DNA from: Mytilus californianus
Taxonomy: Eukaryota
Direction: 5' to 3'
NCBI RefSeq assembly: GCF_021869535.1
Contig: NW_026262701.1
Span: 44,516,001-44,580,000 of the forward strand
DNA: 64,000 nucleotides
The notes beneath the pieces are model-generated. The model did no database searches, was not told where the DNA came from, and worked only from the letters and a program-made list of their open reading frames with translations. The translations under genes and the position numbers were made by a program. Below are positions 1,425 through 64,000 of this stretch, one piece after another (position 1 is the first letter of the stretch; every line of letters starts with the position of its first letter).

Positions 1425-2995
1425 TTTCATCAGCCATCCTAGCAGCTAATGTCATTAATCACTTACCCTAAGTTTATTTTTGTATTCTCCCACAGACTTC
1501 CTAGCAGCCAATGTCATAAATCACTTACCCTAAGTTTATCTTTGTATTCCCTCACAGACTTCCTAGCAGCCAATGTCATTAATCACTTACCCTAAGTTTA
1601 TCTTTGTATTCCCCCACAGCCTTCCTAGCAGCCAATGTCATTAATCACTTACCCTAAATTTATCTTTGTATTCTCCCACAGCCTTCCTAGCAACCAATGT
1701 CACTAATCACTTACCCTAAGTTTATCTTTGTATTCTCCCACAGCCTTCCTAGCAGCCAATGTCATTAATCACTTACCCTAAGTTTATCTTTGTATTCTCC
1801 AACAGCCTTCCTAGCAGCCAATGTCATTAATCACTTACCCTAAGTTTATCATTGTATTCTCTAACAGCCTTCCTAGCAGCCAATGTCATTAATCACTTAC
1901 CCTAAGTTTATCTTTGTATTCCCCCACAGCCTTCCTAGCAGCCAATGTCATTTATCACTTACCCTAAGTTTATCTTTGTATTCCCCCACAGCCTTACTAG
2001 CAGGCGATGTCATTAATCACTTACCCTAAGTTTATCTTTGTATTCTCTAACAGCCTTCCTAGCAGCCAATGTCATTAATCACTTACCCTAAGTTTATCTT
2101 TGTATTCCCCCACAGCCTTCCTAGCAGCCAATGTCATTTATCACTTACCCTAAGTTTATCTTTGTATTCCCCCACAGCCTTCCTAGCAGCCAATGTCATT
2201 AATCACTTACCCTAAGTTTATTTTTGTATTCCCCAACAGCCTTCCTAGCAGCCAATGTCATTAATCACTTACCCTAAGTTTATCTTTGTATTCTCTAACA
2301 GCCTTCCTAGCAGCCAATGTCATTAATCACTTACCCTAAGTTTATCTTTGTATTCTCCCACAGCCTTCCTAGCAGCCAATGTCATTAATCACTTACCCTA
2401 AGTTTATCTTTGTATTCTCCCACAGCCTTCCTAGCAGCCAATGTCATTAATCACTTACCCTAAGTTTATCTTTGTATTCTCTAACAGCCTTCCTAGCAGC
2501 CAATGTCATTAATCACTTACCCTAAGTTTATCTTTGTATTCTCCCACAGCCTTCCTAGCAGCCAATGTCATTAATCACTTACCCTAAGTTTATCTTTGTA
2601 TTCTCCCACAGCCTTCCTAGCAGCCAATGTCATTAATCACTTACCCTAAGTTTATCTTTGTATTCCCCCACAGCCTTACTAGCAGCCAATGTCATTAATC
2701 ACTTACCCTAAGTTTATCTTTGTATTCTCCCACAGTCTTCCTAGCAGCCAATGTCATTAATCACTTACCCTAAGTTTATCTTTGTATTCTCCCACAGCCT
2801 TCCTAGCAGGCGATGTCATTAATCACTTACCCTAAGTTTATCTTTGTATTCTCCCACAGCCTTCCTAGCAGCCAATGTCATTAATCACTTACCCTAAGTT
2901 TATCATTGTATTCTCTAACAGCCTTCCTAGCAGCCAATGTCATTAATCACTTACCCTAAGTTTATCTTTGTATTCTCCCACAGCCTTCCTAGCTG
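1425..2995 (-). repeat. 62-bp minisatellite, 25 copies, derived from an exon 3' end plus splice donor
   Basis: Motif cacttaccc recurs every 62 bp from 1460 to 2948 (24 x 62). Minus-strand unit: gtaagtgattaatgacattggctgctaggaaggctgtgggagaatacaaagataaacttagg. Confidence 0.97.
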
Positions 2996-3098
2996 CCACC
3001 AGTAAAGCTGTCTTCTCATTGGATTCCTGTTTGTAAGCATCTATTTCTTCCTTCAGTTCCTTTATTTCATCTTTTAACCTTGGTATTGTTTCTAAGTT
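2955..3098 (-). CDS. Coiled-coil protein exon (NLETIPRLKDEIKELKEE...GEYKDKLR)
   Basis: Acceptor acttttcttcag, donor AGG|GTAAGT, 144 nt, phase 0 to 0. Its 3' end is the first unit of the 62-bp minisatellite. Confidence 0.9.
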
Positions 3099-3307
3099 CT
3101 GAAGAAAAGTTTGTATTCAATTTATTAAAACCTGATTATGAAAACTTTGTTGTACTCCCTTCAAACCTTAATACCTAAATATTTTTAACAAATGATTTTA
3201 GCACTGTTCCTTTGCTTTTCATGTGCACAAAGTGATTTGTGTCATGAATTGATACAACATATCCTTTTTCCTTTAAAAAATGCAGGTAAATCTTTGAACA
3301 CTGTTGA

Positions 3308-3563
3308 GGGGGCCTCGGTGGACAAGTGGTCTAAGGAGTCATAATTCTGTATCACTAGCCTGCCAACACTCAGATTGTGAGTTTGAACCCCACACGTGGT
3401 AGGTGCATTCGATTTCAATCTTGATTGACTAGGATTGTCAGATTTCCTGCCGACGGTTGATTATTCTCTCCGGGCAATCTGGCTGCCTCCACAATTAACA
3501 ACTGACTGCCATGAAATAGCTAATAGTGCTGATAGTGGCTTTAAACACCAATCAATCAATCAA
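3308..3563 (+). mobile_element. tRNA-derived SINE
   Basis: A-box-like tggacaagtgg, B-box-like gagtttgaacc, (caat)n tail; homologous copy at 7958. Confidence 0.75.
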
Positions 3564-6164
3564 ATGAAGACTGTTCATGGATTTCCCCATGTTTTTTCTG
3601 ATTTTTTTGGTGTTGTAAGGATTCATTGATTGTATATATACACTGAATATTTTTTTTGTAAGTAGCAATTTGGTAAAATTTCTCAAATTCTGAAGATTTC
3701 ATACTTTTTAAGATCACTGACAGACCAGGATGTAAAAATCTAAAGAATATCTTTGGTAAGACTCCGACTCCCTTTTTTCAAAGAGGCAAAACTTAATTAA
3801 ATTACTTCGGTAAATTTCCAGTTTCCTCAGTAAACTTCAAATATAAAATTTTGTAGGGCATAGTTGTCTAAAGCCAATCAGTAAATTCACTTACCTCTTC
3901 AAATCAACCCCTATTGTTTCTAAATATAAAGCACACATAGATTCCCTTAAGTGTCTTGGAAAGGAGAAAAAGGTCTGGATGCATGTATAGGTCATAAGAT
4001 GGCTTAACAGCCATCTGCTCCCAAAACAGATTATGTTAATAATGAATAAATATATTGTAGTACTGTATTAGGGTGTGTATAATACACACTTTCCCCCCAA
4101 GACATATAATTGATAGTCAGAGAGGATGCATATTATACACAACTGTAAACTCTACAGACGTTTTTTTTTATAAATAATATAATGGGTTTTTTTCATTACT
4201 GTATATATTCAAAGAGTTTTTTTATATTCAAATTTTTTTATTTTCATAAATGATGATTTTTTTTTTTTGTGATATTCAAAACTCTAAAATTTATAGTCTC
4301 TAATATCACCTTTATTTTTAAAATGGGTGCATGGTCATTTCCAATTCTTGAAGGGCTGTTAAAGACATTGATATTACAATTCCAGTGGGTGGTTGGAAAA
4401 TTAATCAAATTTTCAAAACTATAAACTGAAAATTGTCTTAATCTTGAGTAATTTAGAGAATGAAATGTATTATAAACACATGTCTATTGTAAAAGATTAT
4501 AATTTGCCATCCTAGTCCGTGTTCTTTTTGTTGATATGTTTTTGGGTTGCTGGCCCATTGTCATATATGCCACATTTCCATTTATTTGTATTCTAATTGT
4601 CATTAAATCGATTTTGGAACAGGCCAGAGAAAAATTCATGCAGTTTCTATAACTGGAGTTATTGCATGTACAATATGGCTAAGTTTAGAAACATAATTGT
4701 TTTCTTGACTATAACATTTATCGCTACATTTGAATCAAGTACAATGAAATAGTTTTAATGTGCAATTTTAAAAAAACTGGACCACAAAACGCATTTCCTT
4801 TCCATCATAGAGCAATAAATGAACAATTAAATAAATGAGAATGGAATATATAGATTGAGGCATGCTAGTATAACATCAAATACACATTCAGTTAGAAACA
4901 CTTTTTGTTTCTTTAATTGGCTGCAATTAAGGTACATTACATAGCAGGTGTCAAGGGCTCTTCTCAACAACAGAAAAGTTTAAAAAATCTTAAAAGTATT
5001 TTTAACCATTAGAAATATGTGTGCATAATGATACAGAAATGTTTTATGACAGATACATATTTTTTTTTAATTGACAGAAATATAATTAGGAATCTTCACC
5101 TAACTACACATTCATATAAAGAGACTTCAATAAAACATTTTATCTCAATTTTAGTTCTTTCAGTTTATTTGATATTACAAGCTGAAAATTATTCAATTAC
5201 TTTCTGTTATTTTCTATGATCTAAAAAACTATATTCATAATGTGTTAATAAACCAGTTCTGAATATCAAAGATGTTTTCAGCAACAATAGACAAAAGTTT
5301 AAACAGAAATCTAACATTTATACAAGTGAAAACCTATAAGTAGTGTATTAGGTGTCACATCTTCATATAAAGTTCAAAATAAAATGTTAAAACCCAAATT
5401 AAAAAAAATAAAAATTTAATTAAACCATTTTAATTTTTCTTACAAAAGCAATGATTCACAGAAGAAAACATTATATATGATTAATATTTTTGGACTGGTT
5501 CCTGGTGTTTATTGATTCTTTACATGTCAATAATGTCACCCAGCTGTAAAATTTAATGGCTTTTTAAAGATTACATTTTACATCTCCATTTAAAGATTTA
5601 ATGTGCTCTGATCTATATCACTATGTATCAGATCAACTGGAATAATTCAACCTTTCACACATTTTGAAAATAACAACCTGACATTTAACTGAATATTATT
5701 AGATATCTAAGAGATCTGAACGTGGACCACTATTCTTTTAAGAGGTGTTGTCAGTTCTTTTATGTAGGCATAATATTCCTTTGAAATTGATATTTAAGAA
5801 AATTTTCAGTTGACAAAAAAAGTAAAAATTTGTTTTTTTATAATGTACAGGTTTTCTTTTCAAATAATTTCATATTCCTTTTTGGTATTACTTTTGGTGA
5901 CCTCACTTCATGCTCTTCGTCAGTTGAAAATTCTAAATTTCAAATATTTTGTTTTGTTAATTGATTGCCATCTGCATGTAATGTTTGTCAATAAACATGA
6001 ATCAGACTTAGGACAATATTTAGGTTTAGCACCACTGAATAGGCATTTTTTTTAAATGTGTATATTCTACCTAGTGTAAATTATATAAATAATATGTGTA
6101 AGCAATTAGAACTCTTCATTATTTGCTGATAACTTGATATCTTATAATTTCACTAATTACTTCG

Positions 6165-7146
6165 CCATCTTGTAATCTAACTGATAACTTGGGTATCTTG
6201 TAATCTAACTATAACTTGGGAATCTGGAAATCTAACTGATTACTTGAGTATCTTGTAAGCTAACTGATTACTTGGGTATCTTGTAATCTAACTGATTACT
6301 TGGGTATCTTGTAATCTAACTGATTACTTGTGTATCTTGTAATCTAACTGATTACTTGACTATCTTGTAATCTAACTGATTACTTGGGTATCTTGTAATC
6401 TAACTGATTACTTGAGTATCTAGTAATCTAACTATAACTTGGGTATCTTGAAATCTAACTGATTACTTGAGTATCTTGTAATCTAACTGATTACTTGGGT
6501 ATCTTGTAATCTAACTGATTACTTGGGTATCTTGTAATCTAACTGATTACTTGGGTATCTTGTAATCTAACTGATTACTTGACTATCTTGTAATCTAACT
6601 GATTACTTGGGTATCTTGAAATCTAACTGATTACTTGACTATCTTGTAATCTAACTGATTACTTGGGTATCTTGTAATCTAACTGATTACTTGAGTATCT
6701 TGTAATCTAACTTATTAGATGGGTATCTTGTAATCTAACTGATTACTTGAGTATCTTGTAATCTAACTGCTAATTCAGTAGCTTGTAATCTAACTGATTA
6801 CTTGAGTATCTTGTTATTTAACTGATTACTTGAGTATCTTGTAATCTTAATTATTACTTGGTATCTTGTAATCTAACTGATTACTTGAGTATCTTGTAAT
6901 CTAACTGATTACTTGAGTATCTTGTGATCTAACTGATAACTTGAGTATCTTGTAATCTAACTGATTACTTGAGTAGCTTGTAATCTAAATAATTACTTGT
7001 GTACCTTATAATTTCACTGATTATTTATGTATTTTGTTATTTCCTTGATCACTTGAATATCATGTAATTTTACTGATTACTTGAGTAGCTTGTTATTTTA
7101 CTAATAACTTGAGTATCTTGTTATTTTACTGATTACTTGAGTATCT
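6165..7146. repeat. 28-bp minisatellite, about 35 copies, degenerating at both ends
   Basis: Unit tacttg(gg/ag/ac)tatcttgtaatctaactgat. Confidence 0.95.
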
Positions 7147-8197: not shown

Positions 8198-8882
8198 TGT
8201 TATAGCAAATTTTAGTAAGCATACAAACTTAAACATACATGTGTAAATAAGTCTCTCATAAAAATTGTAACATTGAATTATGGTACATTATTTGCTATAG
8301 ATGACCTAAATTTTAGTGTCACTGGTTTGCTATAATATTGACATGTAGTCTCTTTTATTCTCTTCAATCTAACTTAACTGAACAGACTTAACAATAGGTA
8401 CACATTTCCACAGACAGGAGCAACAATCTTTTAATAAGTAGAGACAATTCAAAGGTTCAAACAAGTGGCAATTACTCAAAATTTACCGTTATTTTTAGAC
8501 AAAATCCTTTATGGCAAACCTCATACATAGGACCAATTTAATTCACAATACTTAACCTATACTGTGAATGATATGTAACTATAATTCATACACCTTTTCT
8601 CTGTCATTAAAATGTTGGACTTTGATACTAAATGGCACTTGATAAAGTTTCTTTAGCATTTGTATTTTTCATTAACAAGTCTTTTAATTTATTGTACACT
8701 TGGGTTTTTGTCAATTGCTAATTTATTGGTAGCTAAGAGAAAACTTGGTCCAATTACAGTTGGGGGACTACGTGAAAACCTTTAAGAGCCTTTATTACCA
8801 AAATAAGACACAGGGAAAAACTAAGAGAAATCATAAGTAAGCCAGACTAAGAAAAAATAGATGATTTTGAATACACTCGTAC

Positions 8883-21252: not shown

Positions 21253-23116
21253 GTAGCGTACTTAAAACTTATATATATCTTCTTTTTTTTTTATCAATCC
21301 TACTTTTTAAATTCAAATAACGAATTTTCCAGTTGAATATATAAATCCTATATCTATTTATTCAACATCATTCAAATTGTTGTAAGCTTTACATTACATG
21401 TAATTCAAACACCATCCATCATGTTAAATGTAAAATTAATAATTCAAGGATGATATACAATGAAACAGAACATTTTGTATCCTAATCTGTTGCTCTCAAA
21501 ACGACATATCACTTCAAATCTGAATACTGTTCATATCAGCTTGCACTCGATGGGACAAGGTGATAGAAATATTGATAATAAATCCAACAATTGCAACCTT
21601 CCTTTAGTTTCTGATAATGGTATCCAGTTAAAAGGATCGGAAATCGTATATAAAAGTTTAGGAATTATTTCACCAATACACTTATTGTGTACACTCCTAA
21701 CATGAACTCGTAAATTATATGTTAAAAACTTAATGACTAAATTAGCAACAGTAAAATCAGCGAAATGAATGACTGCTTATGAATTGCTTTCTATTATTTA
21801 TTGTCACTTTTCCTTTTAAGATAGCCATCAGTCTCGTAATTTTTTGCATGGAATTTTTATTTATTCAGAAACGTAGGTAAATGGGTTTATTACAAATTTG
21901 CGACCCTAATGACAATTCTAAGTGGACCTAATCAATGCATCAAACATTTCCAAATGGAAAAAGGATCAAAGAATTTAATTCTAAATGATAAATGGGCTGG
22001 TTATGAGATCTAGAAATTATAATATAATTTCTCTATTGTTAATGTTAACAGTCAAACAAGTTAATTAATAACAAGTAATTAGTTCGTTAAAATAGAACAG
22101 AGTGCAAACTATATGCTATTCATTGATGAATAAAATTTGTTTTGGAAGTAAATCAGTACAATCAAAACACTGTGTAAAGTCCATTAACTTATTCTAACCT
22201 ACATTTAAAAGGACATGAAAACTTTAAATTTACAGTAATACTGAACATAAAATTAACTAGGTCTCTCAAAATTACTAAATAGATATAAACAAAACTGTTA
22301 CATGGGAATCATTTGCAAGCAGATAAAAAAAAAAGAAAAAGAAAAGAAAAGAAAAGAGTTCCAATATTCTCTCTTTGCATGTTAATATTTTATCTGTCCA
22401 AGGGCAATAACTAAAACATTTTCTGTTTGTTTTGGTTCTTTAAAACCTTTTAAAAATATCTTTGAGAAATCAAGTATCTATACAAATCCTTGGAGAAATG
22501 TAAGCTTGAGAGTAATTCATAAAATACAATTATAATTGATTTTTCCAAGGGGCATAACTCTTTTTAAAAAAAGTTGATTGCCACTGACTTATCTGAGTTT
22601 CTAATTATTGCTGATATACGCCCTCGATATTAACTTCATTAATATCTGGCAAGAATAGTACATGAACAAGCAGTTACAATGCAATTTTTGTTTATAGAAT
22701 TTTCATTTTTCAAAGGGAGATCACTCCTGAAAAAATTAATTGATCAGCACTGAGTTTTGAATATATCCCAAACATTGCTGATACAAACCTTTACTATAAG
22801 TTTGATAAAAATCTGGCAATAATTGTAACTTCAGACTGTAAGCCATTATACAATGCAATTTTACATATAATTATTTCCAAAGTGCATAAATCTTTTTAAA
22901 AAGTTAGCCGGCACTGATTTTCGAATTTGACTGAGACATTGTTAATATAAATTTCATAATAATCTGGAAAGAATTGTACACTTCATAGCACTAACAATGC
23001 AATTTTCCATAAAATTAATATTTCCTAGTGGCATAATTCTTTAAAATAAAATGCTCCGCTGGGCGCAGCTTGATACGACCGCAGAGGTCGAACCCTGAAC
23101 AGTTGGGGTAAGTATG

Positions 23117-25467
23117 TTGTAATATCATCCACGACTCACTTCGTGCTTACTGTTTGAAATGGATAAAACGGGAAAAAAGCTGACAAAAAATCTTTGGACT
23201 CTTTTTTTAATTCAGTAATGAAGATAGTTGATATACGTATACAACTTTTTAAAGAACATTTTACTTTTAACAACAACCATAAAAATCCTATTTCTCGTAT
23301 CAAACATAAACTAAAAGAACTAGCCAAGGAATTTGTTTTTGTCCCGCCTGATAAAGCTGCTAATAATATCATTATAGTTTGACGTAAATTTTACATTGAG
23401 GTTCTGCAAAAGGAAATCACGAATTCACCAACATTCCAACTGACTTCATTTTCAGAAAACAATATCTGTAACAAACATAAACTATTAGCTACTTCTTTAC
23501 AAGCAGAACCAAATACAATGAAAGTCCCAACTATGTACTGGCTTCCGAAGCTACACAAATCACCTTACAAATATAGATTTATTTCATCTTCAAGTCATTG
23601 TTCCACTACTAAATTGTCTATTCTACTTACTAGTACACTTGGTACAATCAAAAACCTGATAATAAATTGTTCAAATAAGGCCTTTGATAATAGTGGAATT
23701 AATTACTTTTGGAGTGTCAAAAACTCATTGGAAGTACTTGATAAATTGCATGCATATATTGGTGATTTTGAATCTGTTCAAAGTTTTGATTTTTCTACCC
23801 TATATTCCACTTAAATGCCTCATATTCTTATTAAGAAAAAATTCACACACCTAATTAAATGGGCATTTAAAAAGTCAGAATGCGAATACATATGTTCAAA
23901 CTCTTTTAGGTCATTTTTTAGTAGCAACAAACAAAAGAACTCGTCAATTGGACATGCTTTGATACTATATCTGCCCTTGAATTTTTACTTGATAACATTT
24001 TTGTTCACTTTAGAGATTCCGTATATCGTCAAGTTATCGGAATTCCAATGGGGACTAACTGTGCACCACTTATTGCGGACCTGTTTTTGTATTGTTATGA
24101 GTTACAATTTATGACTAAAATCAGCAAAGACCCATCGAAACAACATCTGATACAAAAATTTAACAATACTTTCAGATATTTGGATGATATTTTGGCTCTC
24201 AATAATGACGACTTCAGTATGTAAACTAAAGAAATTTATCCTGTTGAACTTACTTTAAATAAAGCTAATACTAACAATGACCACTGTCCTTTCCTCTATC
24301 TTGATATCTATATCATTAACGGGAAGCTTAATACAAAAATTTATGATAAAAGAGATGATTTTTCATTTCCTATCGTTAATTATCCATTTTTAGATGGTGA
24401 CGTTCCCTTGTCACCATCTTATGGTGTTTATATATCTCAACTTGTACGATTGGCTCGTGTATGTAACAACGTATTAGATTTTAGTGAGAGAAATTTATGT
24501 TTTACTGAAAAATTATTACACCAGGGATTTCGATATCATAAACTAGTCAAAACATTTACTAAATTTGATCATCGTTATAAGGACATCATTCGTAAATATA
24601 ACTCAACATGCAGACATCTTATACGTTCGGGTATTTCACATCCAATCTTTTATGGTATTATTCTTTACAAAGCACAAAAATGTCAGTATTCACCTCAAAA
24701 GCTAACAAAACCTTTAAACAGACTTATTAAGAAGGGACATAGTTACGATACTGTTGTCAGGTCATTAAAGATTGCATATTTTGGCTTTAATATTGATTCA
24801 CTTATAGGGTCTTTGCATCAGAATTAAACATATTTATTCTAAAACCAGTTGTTGGCATGACACGGGTTATGTTCTTCTCATATATTTTATGATGGTATAA
24901 TACTAAACCCCTAACAGGAGGGATTGTGCCTGATATTCATATGATGAAGACATAATCTATCAATCAGTTTAATTGAGGTCTGGAGCTGGCATGTCAGTAA
25001 CTGCTAGTAGTCTGTTGTTATTTATGTATTATTGTCATTTTGTTTATTTTCTTTTGTTTCCTATTCTGACATCAGACTCAGACTTCTCTTAAACTGAGTT
25101 TTACTGTGCATACTGTTGTACGTTTGTTTTTTCTACATTGGCTAGAGGTATAGGGGGAGGGTTGAGATCTCAAAAAACATGTTTAACCCCGCCACATTTT
25201 TGCGCCTGTCCCAAGTCAGGAGCCTCTGGCCTTTGTTAGTCTTGTATCATTTTTAATTTTAGTTTCTTGTGTATAATTTGGAGTTTAGTATGACGTCCAT
25301 TATCACTGAACTAGTATACATATTTGTTTAGGGGTCAGCTGAAGGACGCCTCCGGGTGCGGGAGTTTCTCGCTGAATTGAAGACCCATTGGTGGCCTTCG
25401 GCTCTTGTCTGCTCTATGGTCGGGTTGTTGTCTCTTTGACACATTCCCCATTTCCATTCTCAATTTT
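23117..25467 (+). mobile_element. 5'-truncated Penelope-like retroelement (Naiad-type: RT at C-terminus), decayed copy with candidate Sec codon and SECIS
   Basis: RT motifs DKAANN, WLPKLHK, SFDFSTLY, GIPMGTNCAP, RYLDD, YDKRDDF, SYGVYISQL. ORF ends at 24827 with no GIY-YIG after it. Lesions: frameshifts near 23178 and 23941, TAA at 23812 and 24222. In-frame TGA at 23380. Confidence 0.85.
24867..24955 (+). promoter_or_regulatory. Eukaryotic SECIS element (form 2)
   Basis: AUGAU (24889-93), 11 nt, AAA (24905-07), 23 nt, UGAU (24931-34). Helix II GGUAUAAU/AUUGUGCC pairs fully (two G-U). Apical mini-stem CCU-AAC-AGG. Long basal helix UUAUGU-CUUC-UCAUAU/AUAUGA-GAAG-ACAUAA. Confidence 0.8.
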
Positions 25468-25659
25468 ACACAACATTCAAGCTTGATACAGCACTGAATT
25501 TGGATTGTGATTAAATATTTGACACAGCATAGGTTTCTGACACAGAATGTTGTCTAAGAACTTGAAAATTTTAAATTTACCTATTCAAACCATATCATTA
25601 TTATTTGCTTTTATATATAAATCAGAAATAACCAATTTAAAATTGAAAATTTTAAAGAA

Positions 25660-26713: not shown

Positions 26714-29163
26714 AAATGAAAGAAAGAAAAAAAAAATCCCTCCCCCAAATTTGTTTAACCCCTTATGATTCATCACCCCCAAACTCAATCCCAGCCTTCC
26801 CTTTGTGGTATGGTACATTGCAGTACAATTTCAGAGAGATCCATAGTGTCACTTGGACACAAGTGATTGTCTGGAAACTAGAACAATGCTTGTTTTTTGG
26901 CTCCTTTTTGGCCCCAAATTCCTAAACGTTTAGGGCAATTACCCCCAAACTCAAACTAGCTTTCCCTTTATGATATGGAACCTTGTAGTACAATTTCATA
27001 AAGATCCATACACTAACACACAAGTTATGTCTGGAAGTTACAAAAATGCTTATTTTTGGCCCCTTTTTGGCCTCTCATTCCTTAACTGTTGCATGGTACC
27101 ATAACCTCCAAAATCAATCCCAACCTTCCTTTTGTGGTATTGAACCTTATGGTAAAATTTCATAGAGATCCATTCACTTAAACTAAAGTTAGAGTGCGAA
27201 AACCAATGTGTCTTTGGACGACGCCGGACGACAATGACATACCAATATACGACCGCAAATTTTTTTGCGGTCGTATAAAAAAGTTGATCTTCACCAATTT
27301 TCGAACTTGTCTGAGACATTGCTGATATAAATCCTTAATATAAATTTGATAAAAATCTGGCAAGAGTTGTACACGTGACAGGGCTCTCAAGACCTGACAG
27401 ATGGACAGATGCACAGACGCACCCCAGTTTTTCTTTGTGTAAGTTGTGAGGGGACCAATAATCAGACGCAAGAAAGGAAGAAAGATTATGGATAAATGTA
27501 AAAAAAATGTTATACATAAAAAATGTTTAACCCATGTTAAAGGCCTCACTGCAAATTTGAGATGAAGAATGTCAATAAATGTGCTTTTTGTTTTCTCACT
27601 TAATTGTGGTTAGACATTGGCATAAAGCAGTAATCATACATCTGCTCACCAATTTATTACCTAAAGTTGTCACTTCTATTTAAAATCTTTAACATCTAAA
27701 TGTATTGTGAAAAGTAAGTTAGAAAGATAACAGAGAAACTGAAGAAGGTCAGAGGTAAAATTTACTAAAAAATGGTTTAAATACAACAATAATGTAAAAT
27801 ATGTTCCTTGTTGGAATTTCTACACAAGAATTCTATCTAAATTTCATGCAGAGCTGTTTTAAAATATATCGTGAAACCAAAATCATTCAGGTGGAACAAA
27901 AGTTGACCTATCATTAAGTCAACTGATGTATGATGTAGTGTTACATGTAATAACTGCTTTCAACATCTAACAATTGTTTAAATAGCTTCTGATAAAATTC
28001 AATTTGGACCAACCAGTTATAATGTGGTTACAATATGGTTGGTTGTAAAACAGATTGAGTAGCTATTTACTCTAGATCTACATTATCTTTCAAAACACCA
28101 AAAATCATCAAAATTCAAACTGAATTGTTGTGCAACATTGTAATCATAGCATGATTACTATGTAAAAAATTCCAAGTATAGTCAAACACTCGAAAAAAAA
28201 ATTCAACCTATATAACGTTAGATAATTTAATGGTAGTAAGAAAATGAGTTAATTTGAAAACTTGTCAATAATATTCATAATTGTCCCATTTTATTTCATA
28301 TCAAAAGAAATAATTATCTTCTTTTAACATGGTCCTCTCAGAATACCCTTGGTGTCATATATTGAAACATTATTTATTGATCTCAAGATTACCCATAATC
28401 AAGTTCAAAACTGAAAAATAGATCAAGGATTTTCTAAAGTAAACATATTTCAGTCAAGTATCTGATAATCACTTAGAATTTCCAAAAAAAAATTCTAGAC
28501 CTAAGTTTTAAAAGTCAAATCAGCAATTAAATTATATCAAACATTTGGTTATTTTGTATGAAAGATCTATAAAGTTTTCTTTCAAGGCTTGTAAATATTG
28601 TTTTTTAGTATTACTTCAATTAACACAATATTATATCAGATTAAAAAGATCATAACGTCACAATAAAAGAAATTAGGCATATAATGGTATGGTCCATATC
28701 TTTATAATATATATCGATTATGAAACTGAAACTTCACTTCAAAGACTTTGATTTCTTATCATCTAAAACATCTGGATCCACTTGAATATTACATGTATGA
28801 GGGTCTGGATGAGGGGGGTGTCTTTCATTTCTTTATTCTGTACTTTATGCTCATTATTCTCTATTGCCCTCTATGCTGTATTTTAGCCCCGTACAGGCTC
28901 TCATATATTGTGTACAATTGGATTACAAATGTTAAGTGAGGGTATAATACCAGCTCAGTATTATAAGTGAGAGCTTGGGTACTGTTTACTGACATGGTTT
29001 ATTTCTTAAACGTTTCCGTTGATAAAAAAAGAAGTTAGTCAGAAACTTAAGTTCCAACTTCATCAAACATTAGGTTGACCTTTAATATAAAATTGGCTAT
29101 TATTCTATTTAGGTCCTTTTTGGTCATATAGCTCCTTAGAGTGAGTGATATTCAGTTATTTAT

Positions 29164-60875: not shown

Positions 60876-61764
60876 ATGTGCTCCACCTGAGCAGCTGGAT
60901 ACGACTGCAGAGGTCCAACTCTGAACAGTTGGGGCAATTTAGTATGGACATAATATTCAAGCTTGATACAGCTCTCAATTTTGATCAGTATTTGTTGTTT
61001 CTTTATATAGATCAGAAATAATTTATGTTAGAACCAGCTTAGCCAGTATTAGAAAAGTCGTGTTTTTGGCCCCTATTTGGCCTCTAGTTTCTTAATGATT
61101 AAAGCGGCCACAACCCACAAAATCGACCCCAACCTTCTGTGTGTGGTATGGAACCTTGTGGTACAATTTCATAGAGATCCATTGACTAATACTTAAGTAT
61201 TTGTCCGGAAACCAGAAAAACCTTGTTCCTCCCCCCCCTTTTTTTGCCCCTTATTCCTGAACAGTTTGAGCCATAACCCCCAAAGTCAAACCCAACCTTC
61301 CCTTTGTGGTATGGAACCTTGTGTTTCAATTTCATAGAGATCCATAGACTAATACTTAAGTAATTGTCCATTAACCAGAAAAACCTTGTTTTTTCCCCAT
61401 TTTTTTACCCCTTTTCCTGAACGGTTTGAACCATAACCCCCAAAGTCAATCCCAACCTTCCCTTTGTGGTATGGAACCTTGTGGTACAATTTCATAGAGA
61501 TCCATACACTTATACACAAGTTATTGTCCGGAAACTTAGAAAAATGCCTTTTTTGGCCCCCTTTTGACCCCTTACTCCTTATTTAAAACAGTTGAGACCA
61601 TAACACCCAAAATCAATCCCAACCTTCCTTTTGTGCTATTGAACCTTGTGGTTAAATTTCATAGGGATCCATTCACTTATACTAAAGTTATTGTCCGGAA
61701 ACCAAATGTCTTCGGATAACGACGACATGATAGCAATAACGCAAATTTTTTGCGGTCGTAAAAA
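60876..61764 (+). mobile_element. HINE family B with about 5 tandem 125-130-bp cores
   Basis: 5' end homologous to 23049, cores ccaaccttcc...catagagatcc, 3' gcaaattttttgcggtcgta. Confidence 0.75.
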
Positions 61765-64000
61765 AAGTCTAAAGCCCAGGTTGATGGCTCATCTATAAAA
61801 GTGCATCATAATATATTTGGCCTTGCACTGACTTAATAATGAAAAAAATATAAAACTTTCTAACTCAATACAACACCATGTTAACTATAGCCATTCAGAT
61901 GATTTGCTTTCAAATCAAATGTGCTGTTTAATTCCAATAATTCATATTTATCATTCTTTACAATGACTTTACTCTTTAGCATCATAAGCCATGTCATCTC
62001 AAAACTATTTTATATTAAACAATACATACATTTAGGGGACTTAACCATTTGATATTCTGTGGTGGGGAAAAGGAGGGGGGAGGATTTTTTCCAGATTGAT
62101 CATTTATTTTCATCTTTTGTTATGCATGCTTATTTTTTTCATGGCTTAATTTGCAACACGAAAATTTTTTACACTTTTGTACACATTTTCATCCTGCATT
62201 TTGTGTTACCAAATATTCATTTTCATCCTGTCAAAGGTTATTAATTTTCAGTTCTTACCAGGCAGGTGATCAAAATTTAGCAAAGATAGTGCTAAGGAGT
62301 AATCTTACCACATCTTATTTTTACATATTGCTGAGCTGAGGTATCTGAGAAAAAAAATACCCAATATACATGTTAATACTTTAATTTTGATATTGCACAT
62401 GTACATGGTCATGCTTTTCTCAGATTACCTATTATATCTTTACACTAAATCCATTGGATGTGTACTAAATGATATTTTAGTCTGGGAGACCATGGTTTAT
62501 TATTTTTTCTTGAAATTGGGCTTCAAAGTAAATTTTAGTAACTGTGAGTAGAATTTTGCATCTATTTTGATAATCGATTTTGTGCTTAGTACAATCTGAT
62601 GAGTGAAGCCCTTTCCAACTGCTTTTGACATTATGATTTATATGATTGTGTTTTTCTTTAGCCTTTGGAGCTAAGAGCACAAGTATCATTTTTCTTCCCT
62701 TAATTTTTTTTAAAAATCCAAATTAAAGGAAACTTCATTGTTGTATTTTTTGTTAAGGGAGTACACTCCTTTGAAACTGACCCAACTTTTAAAGTCCTCT
62801 TCAGCTTTTATAATTTTTAAGACAGTATAATCAGGTACCTATTTTTTCACAAAGCAAAGTAGTTCTATTTCATACTGATATTTGACATACACCATATACA
62901 CCTGGGTATATCAGAGTTTAAATAAGTACCGTTGAGAATATTTCGAGAATAATTTATCATTAACACTTCAACAAAGATCGAGATATCTTGTATTAAGAAT
63001 ATGGAGAATACCAGACATGATCTTATCTATCAGAAAAAAATAGGTGAAATTAATTAAAAAAAAGTAAATCAACACTACAACCTTTTTAAGTGTTCTCATT
63101 TTTGTTCATTTTATTTTATGGAATATGTTTTAAAAGTCTTGCCATTGTATCATTACAAAGGAGGTCAGAATATAGATGGGACCTACAGCTTAGCTGCAAA
63201 GGAATAACTATTATAATTTAGTAATTTACAAATATCTGAAGATACTTTGAAGGTACTTGGTAAGAAATACTATTGAAGCGGCTGAATATCTGATAATTAA
63301 GCAGCATATGTCTAGAAAAGAACTTGTTATTTTAGTAACATTAAGCCATAAATGAACTACAACCCTGTTTTTCTTGGTCCATGGAACCATGGAAATATAT
63401 CAAAAAATTTGGTTAAGCACTAATTTTACATTATTCAAATACAAAACAAACAAATATACTTTTTTATATAACAACGGGCATAATAACTGTAGAAAAGTAA
63501 ATGTCAAGTCCTCAAAATTCTAACTTCGCAATTTTATGGTTACAGTTGACATATTTTGCATCTTACTGTGAATGAAATATTCTATTAAAGTGTTTGGTCT
63601 GGTGATAGTTAATTTTATACAAAAACCCTAAAAAACAAAATATTTTGAAAACAAAATAGGTCCAAATTTATAAATAGAAAGACTGAAATCCCTTGCATAA
63701 AGTAGATAAACATTTAAGTATAAACCAAAAGTTTGACATATGGACGGACACAATTACAAACAAACATACAAACAAGGATTTCTATACTCCCAAAACTCTC
63801 CAAGATATGTATATATCAATTTTCTTATCAACATGATTAATACTGCCTGATATGACAGCTACTAATATCTTGCAGTTGAGACTGTCATATCAATACACTA
63901 GTAACAATATATTAATTTTTAAATGCATACAATTCTTGTCATACCAATGTCTTCTAATGAATTTATATTCACTGCAATTAAAAAAGCTGACCAAAACTTT

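Follow-up and report, generated by a model that had tools for sequence, protein, structure and literature searches.

A 64,000-nucleotide stretch of the Mytilus californianus genome (RefSeq assembly GCF_021869535.1, contig NW_026262701.1, positions 44,516,001 to 44,580,000 of the forward strand; hereafter the window) harbors a dead, 5'-truncated insertion of a Naiad-clade Penelope-like element (PLE), and the source elements of its family very probably read four UGA codons as selenocysteine (Sec, U) via a selenocysteine insertion sequence (SECIS). We put the probability of this reading at roughly 85%. Selenoprotein-coding transposons are known from four families, all described in one 2021 paper on clam and spider Naiads (Craig et al. 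2021, PMC8557442), a report to which the original prediction for this locus also referred. That prediction took the in-frame TGA and the downstream hairpin of the window copy as signs that UGA is recoded; the proposal is supported for the family, on the strength of fixed TGAs, their coincidence with Cys columns, and the SECIS. The window copy is incapable of protein production: it is truncated, and two TAA codons and two frameshifts interrupt what is left. The claim of recoding therefore applies to the family and not to this copy.

Complete copies of the element are ~4.1 kb long and bounded on either side by a 115-bp direct repeat (L031:4201-4315 and 8229-8343 in the 4143-bp reference copy, L031:4201-8343). 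One complete copy is open in a single frame from ATG to TAA over 1002 codons, with four TGAs as its sole internal stops. These are found at codons 55, 86, 97, and 522 (U1 to U4) in the contexts C-HAKK-U-LT-C, DIT-U-KTNS, IIYLLT-U-NKPGCGIQYVGETG, and DKAANNIIIV-U, respectively, the last of which is the TGA of the window. The window copy corresponds to positions 1797-4142 of the reference copy and begins at about codon 434 of the open reading frame (ORF); what is left encodes the C-terminal part of the linker, the DKA motif, the reverse transcriptase (RT) core with RYLDDIL, and a thumb-like C-terminus. Frame 3, taken from window position 23119, reads ...VFVPPDKAANNIIIV-TGA-RKFYIEVL, and translation bears out that it stays open for 143 codons beyond the TGA (23383-23811), until a TAA at 23812-14 closes it. 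All four of the lesions that had been noted, two TAA codons and two frameshifts, were located by aligning this copy with the complete one (Table 1). The element is indeed present where it was first placed, at 23117-24955, and its true limits are wider, at 23115-25468, with a sharp 3' end common to 27 other copies whose flanks are unrelated.

The family is young and high-copy, with hundreds to thousands of copies. In the 1.65-Gb assembly, the 3' half drew more than 4400 first-look candidates and the 5' half ~2500; identity to the query was 94-100% among the top 40 for each half. Both read and contig depth climb steeply toward the 3' end of the element. We fetched 37 loci and tallied 30 non-redundant copies, nine of which cover the 5' TGA sites. 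TGA is kept in 9/9 copies at U1 and at U3, in 8/9 at U2 (the ninth has a 4-nt insertion), and in 29/29 at U4, the position for which a codon tally had been proposed. Decay stops are scattered and mostly TAA or TAG (27 versus 3 extra TGAs in 22,082 codons), with 46 frameshifts besides. Of the eight copies that span the whole ORF, two are lesion-free apart from the four TGAs. A genome-wide count of a 34-mer centered on U4, in which exact 15-nt and 16-nt flanks were required, returned 282 sites with any codon, among them 275 with TGA and none with TGT or TGC; the other codons seen are TAA, TTA, TGG, and AGA. The caveat attached to the original prediction, that the lesions of this copy leave decay as a possible source of the TGA, is right in that the copy is decayed; the TGA itself is fixed across the family and lies on a Cys column. 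The sharp 3' end shared by 28 copies, together with their differing 5' ends and unrelated flanks, points to separate retrotransposition events and not to segmental duplicates, and we infer that the family is active at present. Near-identical sequence (72-83% of sampled 31-mers) is found in DNA runs filed under four species labels, which indicates that the family is shared by close relatives of the host.

Since a within-family tally reports the TGAs of the master alone, contigs with more distant relatives were compared. A HMMER search with the 424-residue piece between U3 and U4 against 1.84 billion representatives yielded 2667 relatives. Across 48 full-length Cys-type relatives (≤35% identity), all four TGA columns are invariant Cys, with 35, 41, 42, and 48 sequences covering U1, U2, U3, and U4, respectively; the earlier statement that related RTs have Cys at the window TGA is therefore borne out in 48/48. 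U1 corresponds to the second Cys of the CX2-5CxxC finger, U2 to the first Cys of the CCHH finger (the clam site), U3 to the Cys before GIY-YIG, and U4 to the Cys eight amino acids after DKA. Among the 62 nearest predicted-protein clusters, 43 have the residue preceding U4 as their last, and ~9 more stop just before the CxC cysteine.

Twelve Sec-type families, including that of the window (to which they show ~50-80% RT identity), have three to five in-frame TGAs where the ORF is sufficient. All 38 internal TGAs in these families fall on five Cys columns, namely U1-U4 and the first Cys of CxC, and these columns are occupied by Cys in the remaining families and in 12 all-Cys relatives. The combination of sites varies from family to family: L041 and L042, which are nearest to the family of the window (77-80% identity), have TGA at U1, U2, U3, and CxC, and their U4 is Cys (a TGT codon wherever it was read); in L045 TGA occupies all five columns; L038, L040, and L048 have it at U2, U3, and U4; and L049 has it at U2, U3, and CxC. 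An IQ-TREE analysis recovers the twelve Sec-type families as one clade with 100/100 support, separate from the 12 sampled all-Cys relatives, with the family of the window grouped tightly with L041-L043. The Nei-Gojobori ratio of nonsynonymous to synonymous substitution (dN/dS) against L041 and L042 is 0.05-0.09 in segments of 423 and 480 codons downstream of the TGAs, with dS saturated. This is a sign of strong purifying selection across the TGAs and argues that the whole frame was translated during the divergence of these families. One of the comparison sequences, a Joint Genome Institute metagenome contig (L038:1-6959), carries a head-to-tail Sec-type Naiad with two ORF sets and SECIS matches at 2550-2617 and 6731-6798; here the SECIS match overlaps the TAA and also takes in a UGA close to its edge, the layout reported for Naiad_Mmer in the 2021 paper.

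The 3' untranslated region (UTR) harbors the second component. The SECIS-like hairpin that had been predicted at 24867-24955, 40 nt after the TAA at 24825-27, was recovered as an Rfam SECIS_1 match of 29.8 bits (E 6e-4 for a 501-base search; gathering score 35), with its core beginning ~61 nt after the stop. The AUGA quartet is at 24889-92, the unpaired apical AAA at 24905-07, and the UGAU at 24931-34; helix 2 consists of 10 bp (24894-24903 with 24921-24930), and an extended basal stem reaches out to 24868/24954. The hairpin folds at -25.3 kcal/mol (z = -3.8), and 0/200 shuffles fold as well. SECIS_1 matches are also found at the ORF end in two other copies of the family and in L038/L039, L041, L042, L043, L048, and L049, that is, in 7/12 families; L044, L045, and L046 were added by a scan for the core motif. 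The L049 match reaches 37.4 bits, above the gathering score; this family had been considered as an all-Cys control and was rejected when it proved to be Sec-type. L044 has no Rfam SECIS_1 match, with UUGA in place of the AUGA quartet, and L047 has no SECIS within 200 nt after the stop. A covariance model was built from four sequences and then used to align eight matches. In this alignment both sides change in 8/10 pairs of helix 2, 93% of cells are paired versus 33-45% with the partner slid by one to three columns, and none of 500 shuffles attained the observed values. A further match of the covariance model, at window positions 62424-62485 (21 bits, E 0.09), was set aside as chance, as it lacks both an AUGA core and an upstream RT. 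The reference copy itself, otherwise uninterrupted, has a private two-base change in the apical loop of its SECIS (L031:7756-7825; CUAAAC > CAUAAC), by which AAA is shortened to AA, and this copy is absent from the Rfam SECIS_1 list at E ≤ 1.

The host genome encodes two tRNA-Sec genes (79.6 and 77 bits versus an Rfam cut-off of 47). A separate array at G000:C154:27755505-27807263 consists of at least 50 tandem units at a spacing of 728 bp, each scoring 42.8 bits to the tRNA-Sec model and thus under the cut-off; the units are probably another tRNA with a long variable arm or a tRNA-derived repeat. In the read alignments, none of the four TGA sites is among the 40 variant positions listed, beyond which there are 695 further rows, and the observation is thus of little weight.

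Taken together, these features are consistent with a source element of ~4.1 kb, flanked by the 115-bp terminal repeat, that encodes a single 1002-codon protein composed of a GIY-YIG endonuclease, a CxC linker, and an RT, in which four conserved cysteines of the zinc fingers or the DKA motif are encoded as UGA. The single SECIS ~60 nt past the TAA would recruit the SECIS-binding protein, Sec elongation factor, and tRNA-Sec of the host, such that ribosomes could insert Sec at each UGA and complete the protein, which would go on to reverse-transcribe its own RNA at new sites, most often leaving 5'-truncated copies.

Several observations weigh against this proposal. The copies are 97-98% alike, and the within-family tally therefore reflects descent from one master and not independent selection at each site. 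The SECIS_1 scores of the family, 27.9-29.9 bits, all lie under the Rfam gathering threshold of 35, and the covariation alignment is small (eight rows), fitted to the model, and includes one probable chance match. The single all-Cys control, L050, has no SECIS match in its 132 nt of 3' flank and is a weak control. Most comparison families come from metagenome contigs. In two raw-read RNA runs, reads map to both strands of the element and their depth increases from 5' to 3' as DNA copy number does, a pattern that speaks neither for nor against specific sense transcription. Finally, Sec insertion at the UGAs is something that we infer from sequence.

The main competing explanation starts from two points, namely that the hairpin of the family scores under the SECIS_1 gathering threshold and that a structured 3' end is often needed by retroelement RTs. 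On this account, the UGAs would be decoded outside the Sec pathway, for instance by near-cognate Cys or Trp readthrough, and the hairpin would serve, for example, in RT template recognition. We consider this unlikely. The conserved traits of the hairpin are those of a SECIS and not of a generic stem (the AUGA/GA quartet, the unpaired AAA, and a 10-bp helix 2 with compensatory changes), a related family exceeds the curated threshold, and the published Naiad families have grade-A SECISearch3 predictions (PMC8557442). Furthermore, UGA is confined to Cys columns and alternates there with Cys from one family to the next, as is usual in Sec/Cys exchange.

A second alternative is that the TGAs are plain nonsense in a dead, non-autonomous lineage amplified in trans by other Naiads, with the TGA of the window as one more product of decay. 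The window copy is clearly decayed, and given the high identity within the family, one mutated master could have handed its TGAs to all copies; however, the master has TGA as 4/4 of its internal stops, all on invariant Cys columns, as do 38/38 internal TGAs in the twelve families, random stops are mostly TAA or TAG and lie at other positions, and the low dN/dS downstream of the TGAs points to translation of the whole frame. We therefore regard plain nonsense as very improbable. We give slightly less credence still to the notion that the UGAs are real stops which split the gene into pieces translated separately by termination and reinitiation. Gene callers do deliver pieces of ~420 and ~435-490 amino acids, but three of the stops fall inside the zinc-finger/GIY-YIG motifs, 10-42 codons apart, and would cut the endonuclease into nonfunctional peptides; moreover, in relatives the protein is uninterrupted and the stop sites are Cys, and a SECIS is present. 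Recoding of the four UGAs as Sec in the source elements remains the reading that we favor.

Table 1. Features of the Naiad-type insertion in the window (window coordinates)
Feature	Coordinates	Strand	Basis or remark
5'-truncated Naiad-type Penelope-like element	23115..25468	+	Local alignment to complete copy, 98.1% identity
ORF remnant, codons ~434-1002, now in two frames	23115..24827	+	Translations, lesion mapping
DKA motif DKAANNIIIV (23350-23379) and in-frame TGA (23380-23382), predicted Sec site U4	23350..23382	+	
Lesion: net +1 indel, frameshift	23178..23180	+	Alignment to complete copy
Lesion: 3-nt insertion (23813-15) creating in-frame TAA (23812-14)	23812..23815	+	Alignment to complete copy
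Lesion: 1-nt deletion after 23941, frameshift; RT resumes in next frame	23941..23942	+	
Lesion: TAT>TAA nonsense, family codon 802	24222..24224	+	Alignment to complete copy
Terminal stop TAA of family ORF	24825..24827	+	TAA in 29/30 copies, TAG in one
SECIS element (predicted)	24868..24954	+	Rfam SECIS_1 match 24879-24943, fold, covariation
Remainder of 3' UTR and tail	24955..25468	+	Last ~115 nt are the terminal direct repeat (pseudo-long terminal repeat, pseudo-LTR) that also opens complete copies

By architecture and motifs the family is classified as a Naiad, and by its UGA and SECIS features as a predicted selenoprotein Naiad. In the complete copy, a GIY-YIG endonuclease part (IIYLLT-U-NKPGCGIQYVGETGR...) is found N-terminal to the RT, ~420 codons upstream of the DKA/RT part, and aligns with the GIY-YIG block of 42 full-length relatives; it is missing from the window copy because that copy is 5'-truncated. 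Pfam searches with pieces of the ORF gave no GIY-YIG match and so did not help the classification. Zinc-finger-like motifs lie near the GIY-YIG part (C-HAKK-U-LT-C, and DIT-U-...-YLLT-U followed by His residues), and the linker between endonuclease and RT contains the KR-rich stretch, CxC, and GxKF/Y motifs as RKNRSHGRRKNRNQRK, PPSCNCSNS, and SKGPKYRPP. The DKG motif is altered to DKA (DKAANNIIIV), as in nearly all relatives, and the RT motifs RYLDDIL and IGIPMGTNCAP are present. The Pfam RVT_1 match is weak (E 0.004, 17 bits versus a cut-off of 29.6); a protein search returns more than 3000 homologues at E ≤ 1e-20. Pseudo-LTR and tandem traits are represented by the 115-bp terminal repeat, the variable 5' ends, and the head-to-tail tandem in the related contig L038. 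Rfam scans by E-value, run on three complete copies and the related contigs, matched no hammerhead ribozyme. As to insertion bias toward (TA)n, one copy (L012) lies within (TA)n and loose read ends are AT-rich; most examined flanks are not microsatellite.

Some further repeats were observed at or near these insertions. An 84-nt near-perfect palindrome lies exactly at the 5' boundary of a complete copy (L032:4297-4380), where it drew spurious microRNA-family matches in Rfam; it may represent an inverted 5' duplication of the kind known from PLE insertions. In the window, the sequence abutting the truncated 5' end (23057-23114; ...GATACGACCGCAGAGGTCGAACCCTGAACAGTTGGGG...) recurs in diverged form at 60880-60950, 37 kb downstream, and is thus another dispersed repeat, beside or inside which the Naiad copy apparently lies. 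Directly upstream of the element, at 22500-23050, are several diverged units of ~150 bp ('...caatgcaatttt...ggcataactc...'), which Tandem Repeats Finder did not report when run on the window, their divergence being too high. A ~164-bp tandem repeat (2.5 copies, 77% matches) occupies 26775-27178, with similar units at ~61060-61700, and constitutes a satellite-like family with two arrays within 64 kb.

New in this work are a fourth predicted Sec site for a family from bivalves, a fifth for its sister families, and evidence, drawn from alignments and the tree, for one broad Sec-type clade with site-by-site turnover between Cys and Sec. A wider generalization, to which we give somewhat less than even odds and which we offer tentatively, is that Sec-coding Naiads form one large monophyletic radiation, with dozens of families in public assemblies and five positions that toggle between Cys and Sec. 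If so, this genome alone would contain thousands of SECIS-bearing 3' tails, which could load the Sec machinery of the host or supply host 3' UTRs with ready-made SECIS elements. A young family with some uninterrupted ORFs, accompanied by sisters that differ solely in which Cys are Sec, provides a natural series that bears on the role of Sec in a zinc-finger nuclease or an RT, on the interconversion of Cys and Sec, and on whether SECIS elements scattered by transposons act as seeds of new host selenoproteins. Gene callers and transposable element annotators break these elements at every UGA, for which Sec-aware annotation is the remedy.

The family of the window is set apart from the published Naiads by their descriptions in PMC8557442. 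In all four published selenoprotein Naiads, from clams and spiders, the Cys eight amino acids after DKA is UGA; in addition, UGA stands for the first Cys of the CCHH finger in the clam elements and for a Cys of the CX2-5CxxC finger in the spider elements, and Sec insertion is likewise predicted in these cases (PMC8557442). The literature searched contains neither a later account of Sec Naiads nor one from mussels. The clam elements Naiad_Scon (Sinonovacula constricta) and Naiad_Mmer (Mercenaria mercenaria) share with the family of the window an N-terminal GIY-YIG, the CxC linker, DKA, and RT, as well as UGA at the first Cys of CCHH, at the Cys before GIY-YIG, and at DKA+8, and a SECIS just past the stop. 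L038/L039 match the layout of Naiad_Mmer: they have three UGAs, and their SECIS overlaps the first stop other than UGA. Unlike the clam Naiads, the family of the window uses a fourth UGA, for the second Cys of a CX4CxxC finger, a site which in the paper is UGA in the spider element Naiad_Sdum only, and its SECIS core begins ~61 nt after the stop versus 1-21 nt in the clam elements; its sister families use the first Cys of CxC as a predicted Sec site, a position unlisted in 2021. The spider elements Naiad_Sdum and Naiad_Smim (Stegodyphus) resemble it in having UGAs at the CX2-5CxxC, pre-GIY-YIG, and DKA+8 Cys and a 3' SECIS; the transition to Sec in spiders was taken to be independent, and chelicerate Naiads are without the IFD insertion (PMC8557442).

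The Cys-type bivalve Naiads of the same study agree with the family of the window in clade, architecture, very high copy number, pseudo-LTRs, and 5' truncation. Mussel Naiads are described there solely as Cys-type, with UGA unreported and with the CX2-5CxxC motif lengthened by a 5-amino-acid insert (PMC8557442), whereas the family of the window has a short C-x4-U-x2-C that lacks this insert, and four UGAs. Finally, among host genes, Selenoprotein P, which in bivalves has a very high Sec content (Baclaocos et al. 2019, cited in PMC8557442), provides a parallel in that several UGAs per mRNA are recoded processively under direction from the 3' UTR, as is predicted for the family of the window. 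Selenoprotein P is a host gene unrelated in sequence, whereas the family described here is a mobile element in which a single SECIS would serve UGAs up to ~2.9 kb upstream.

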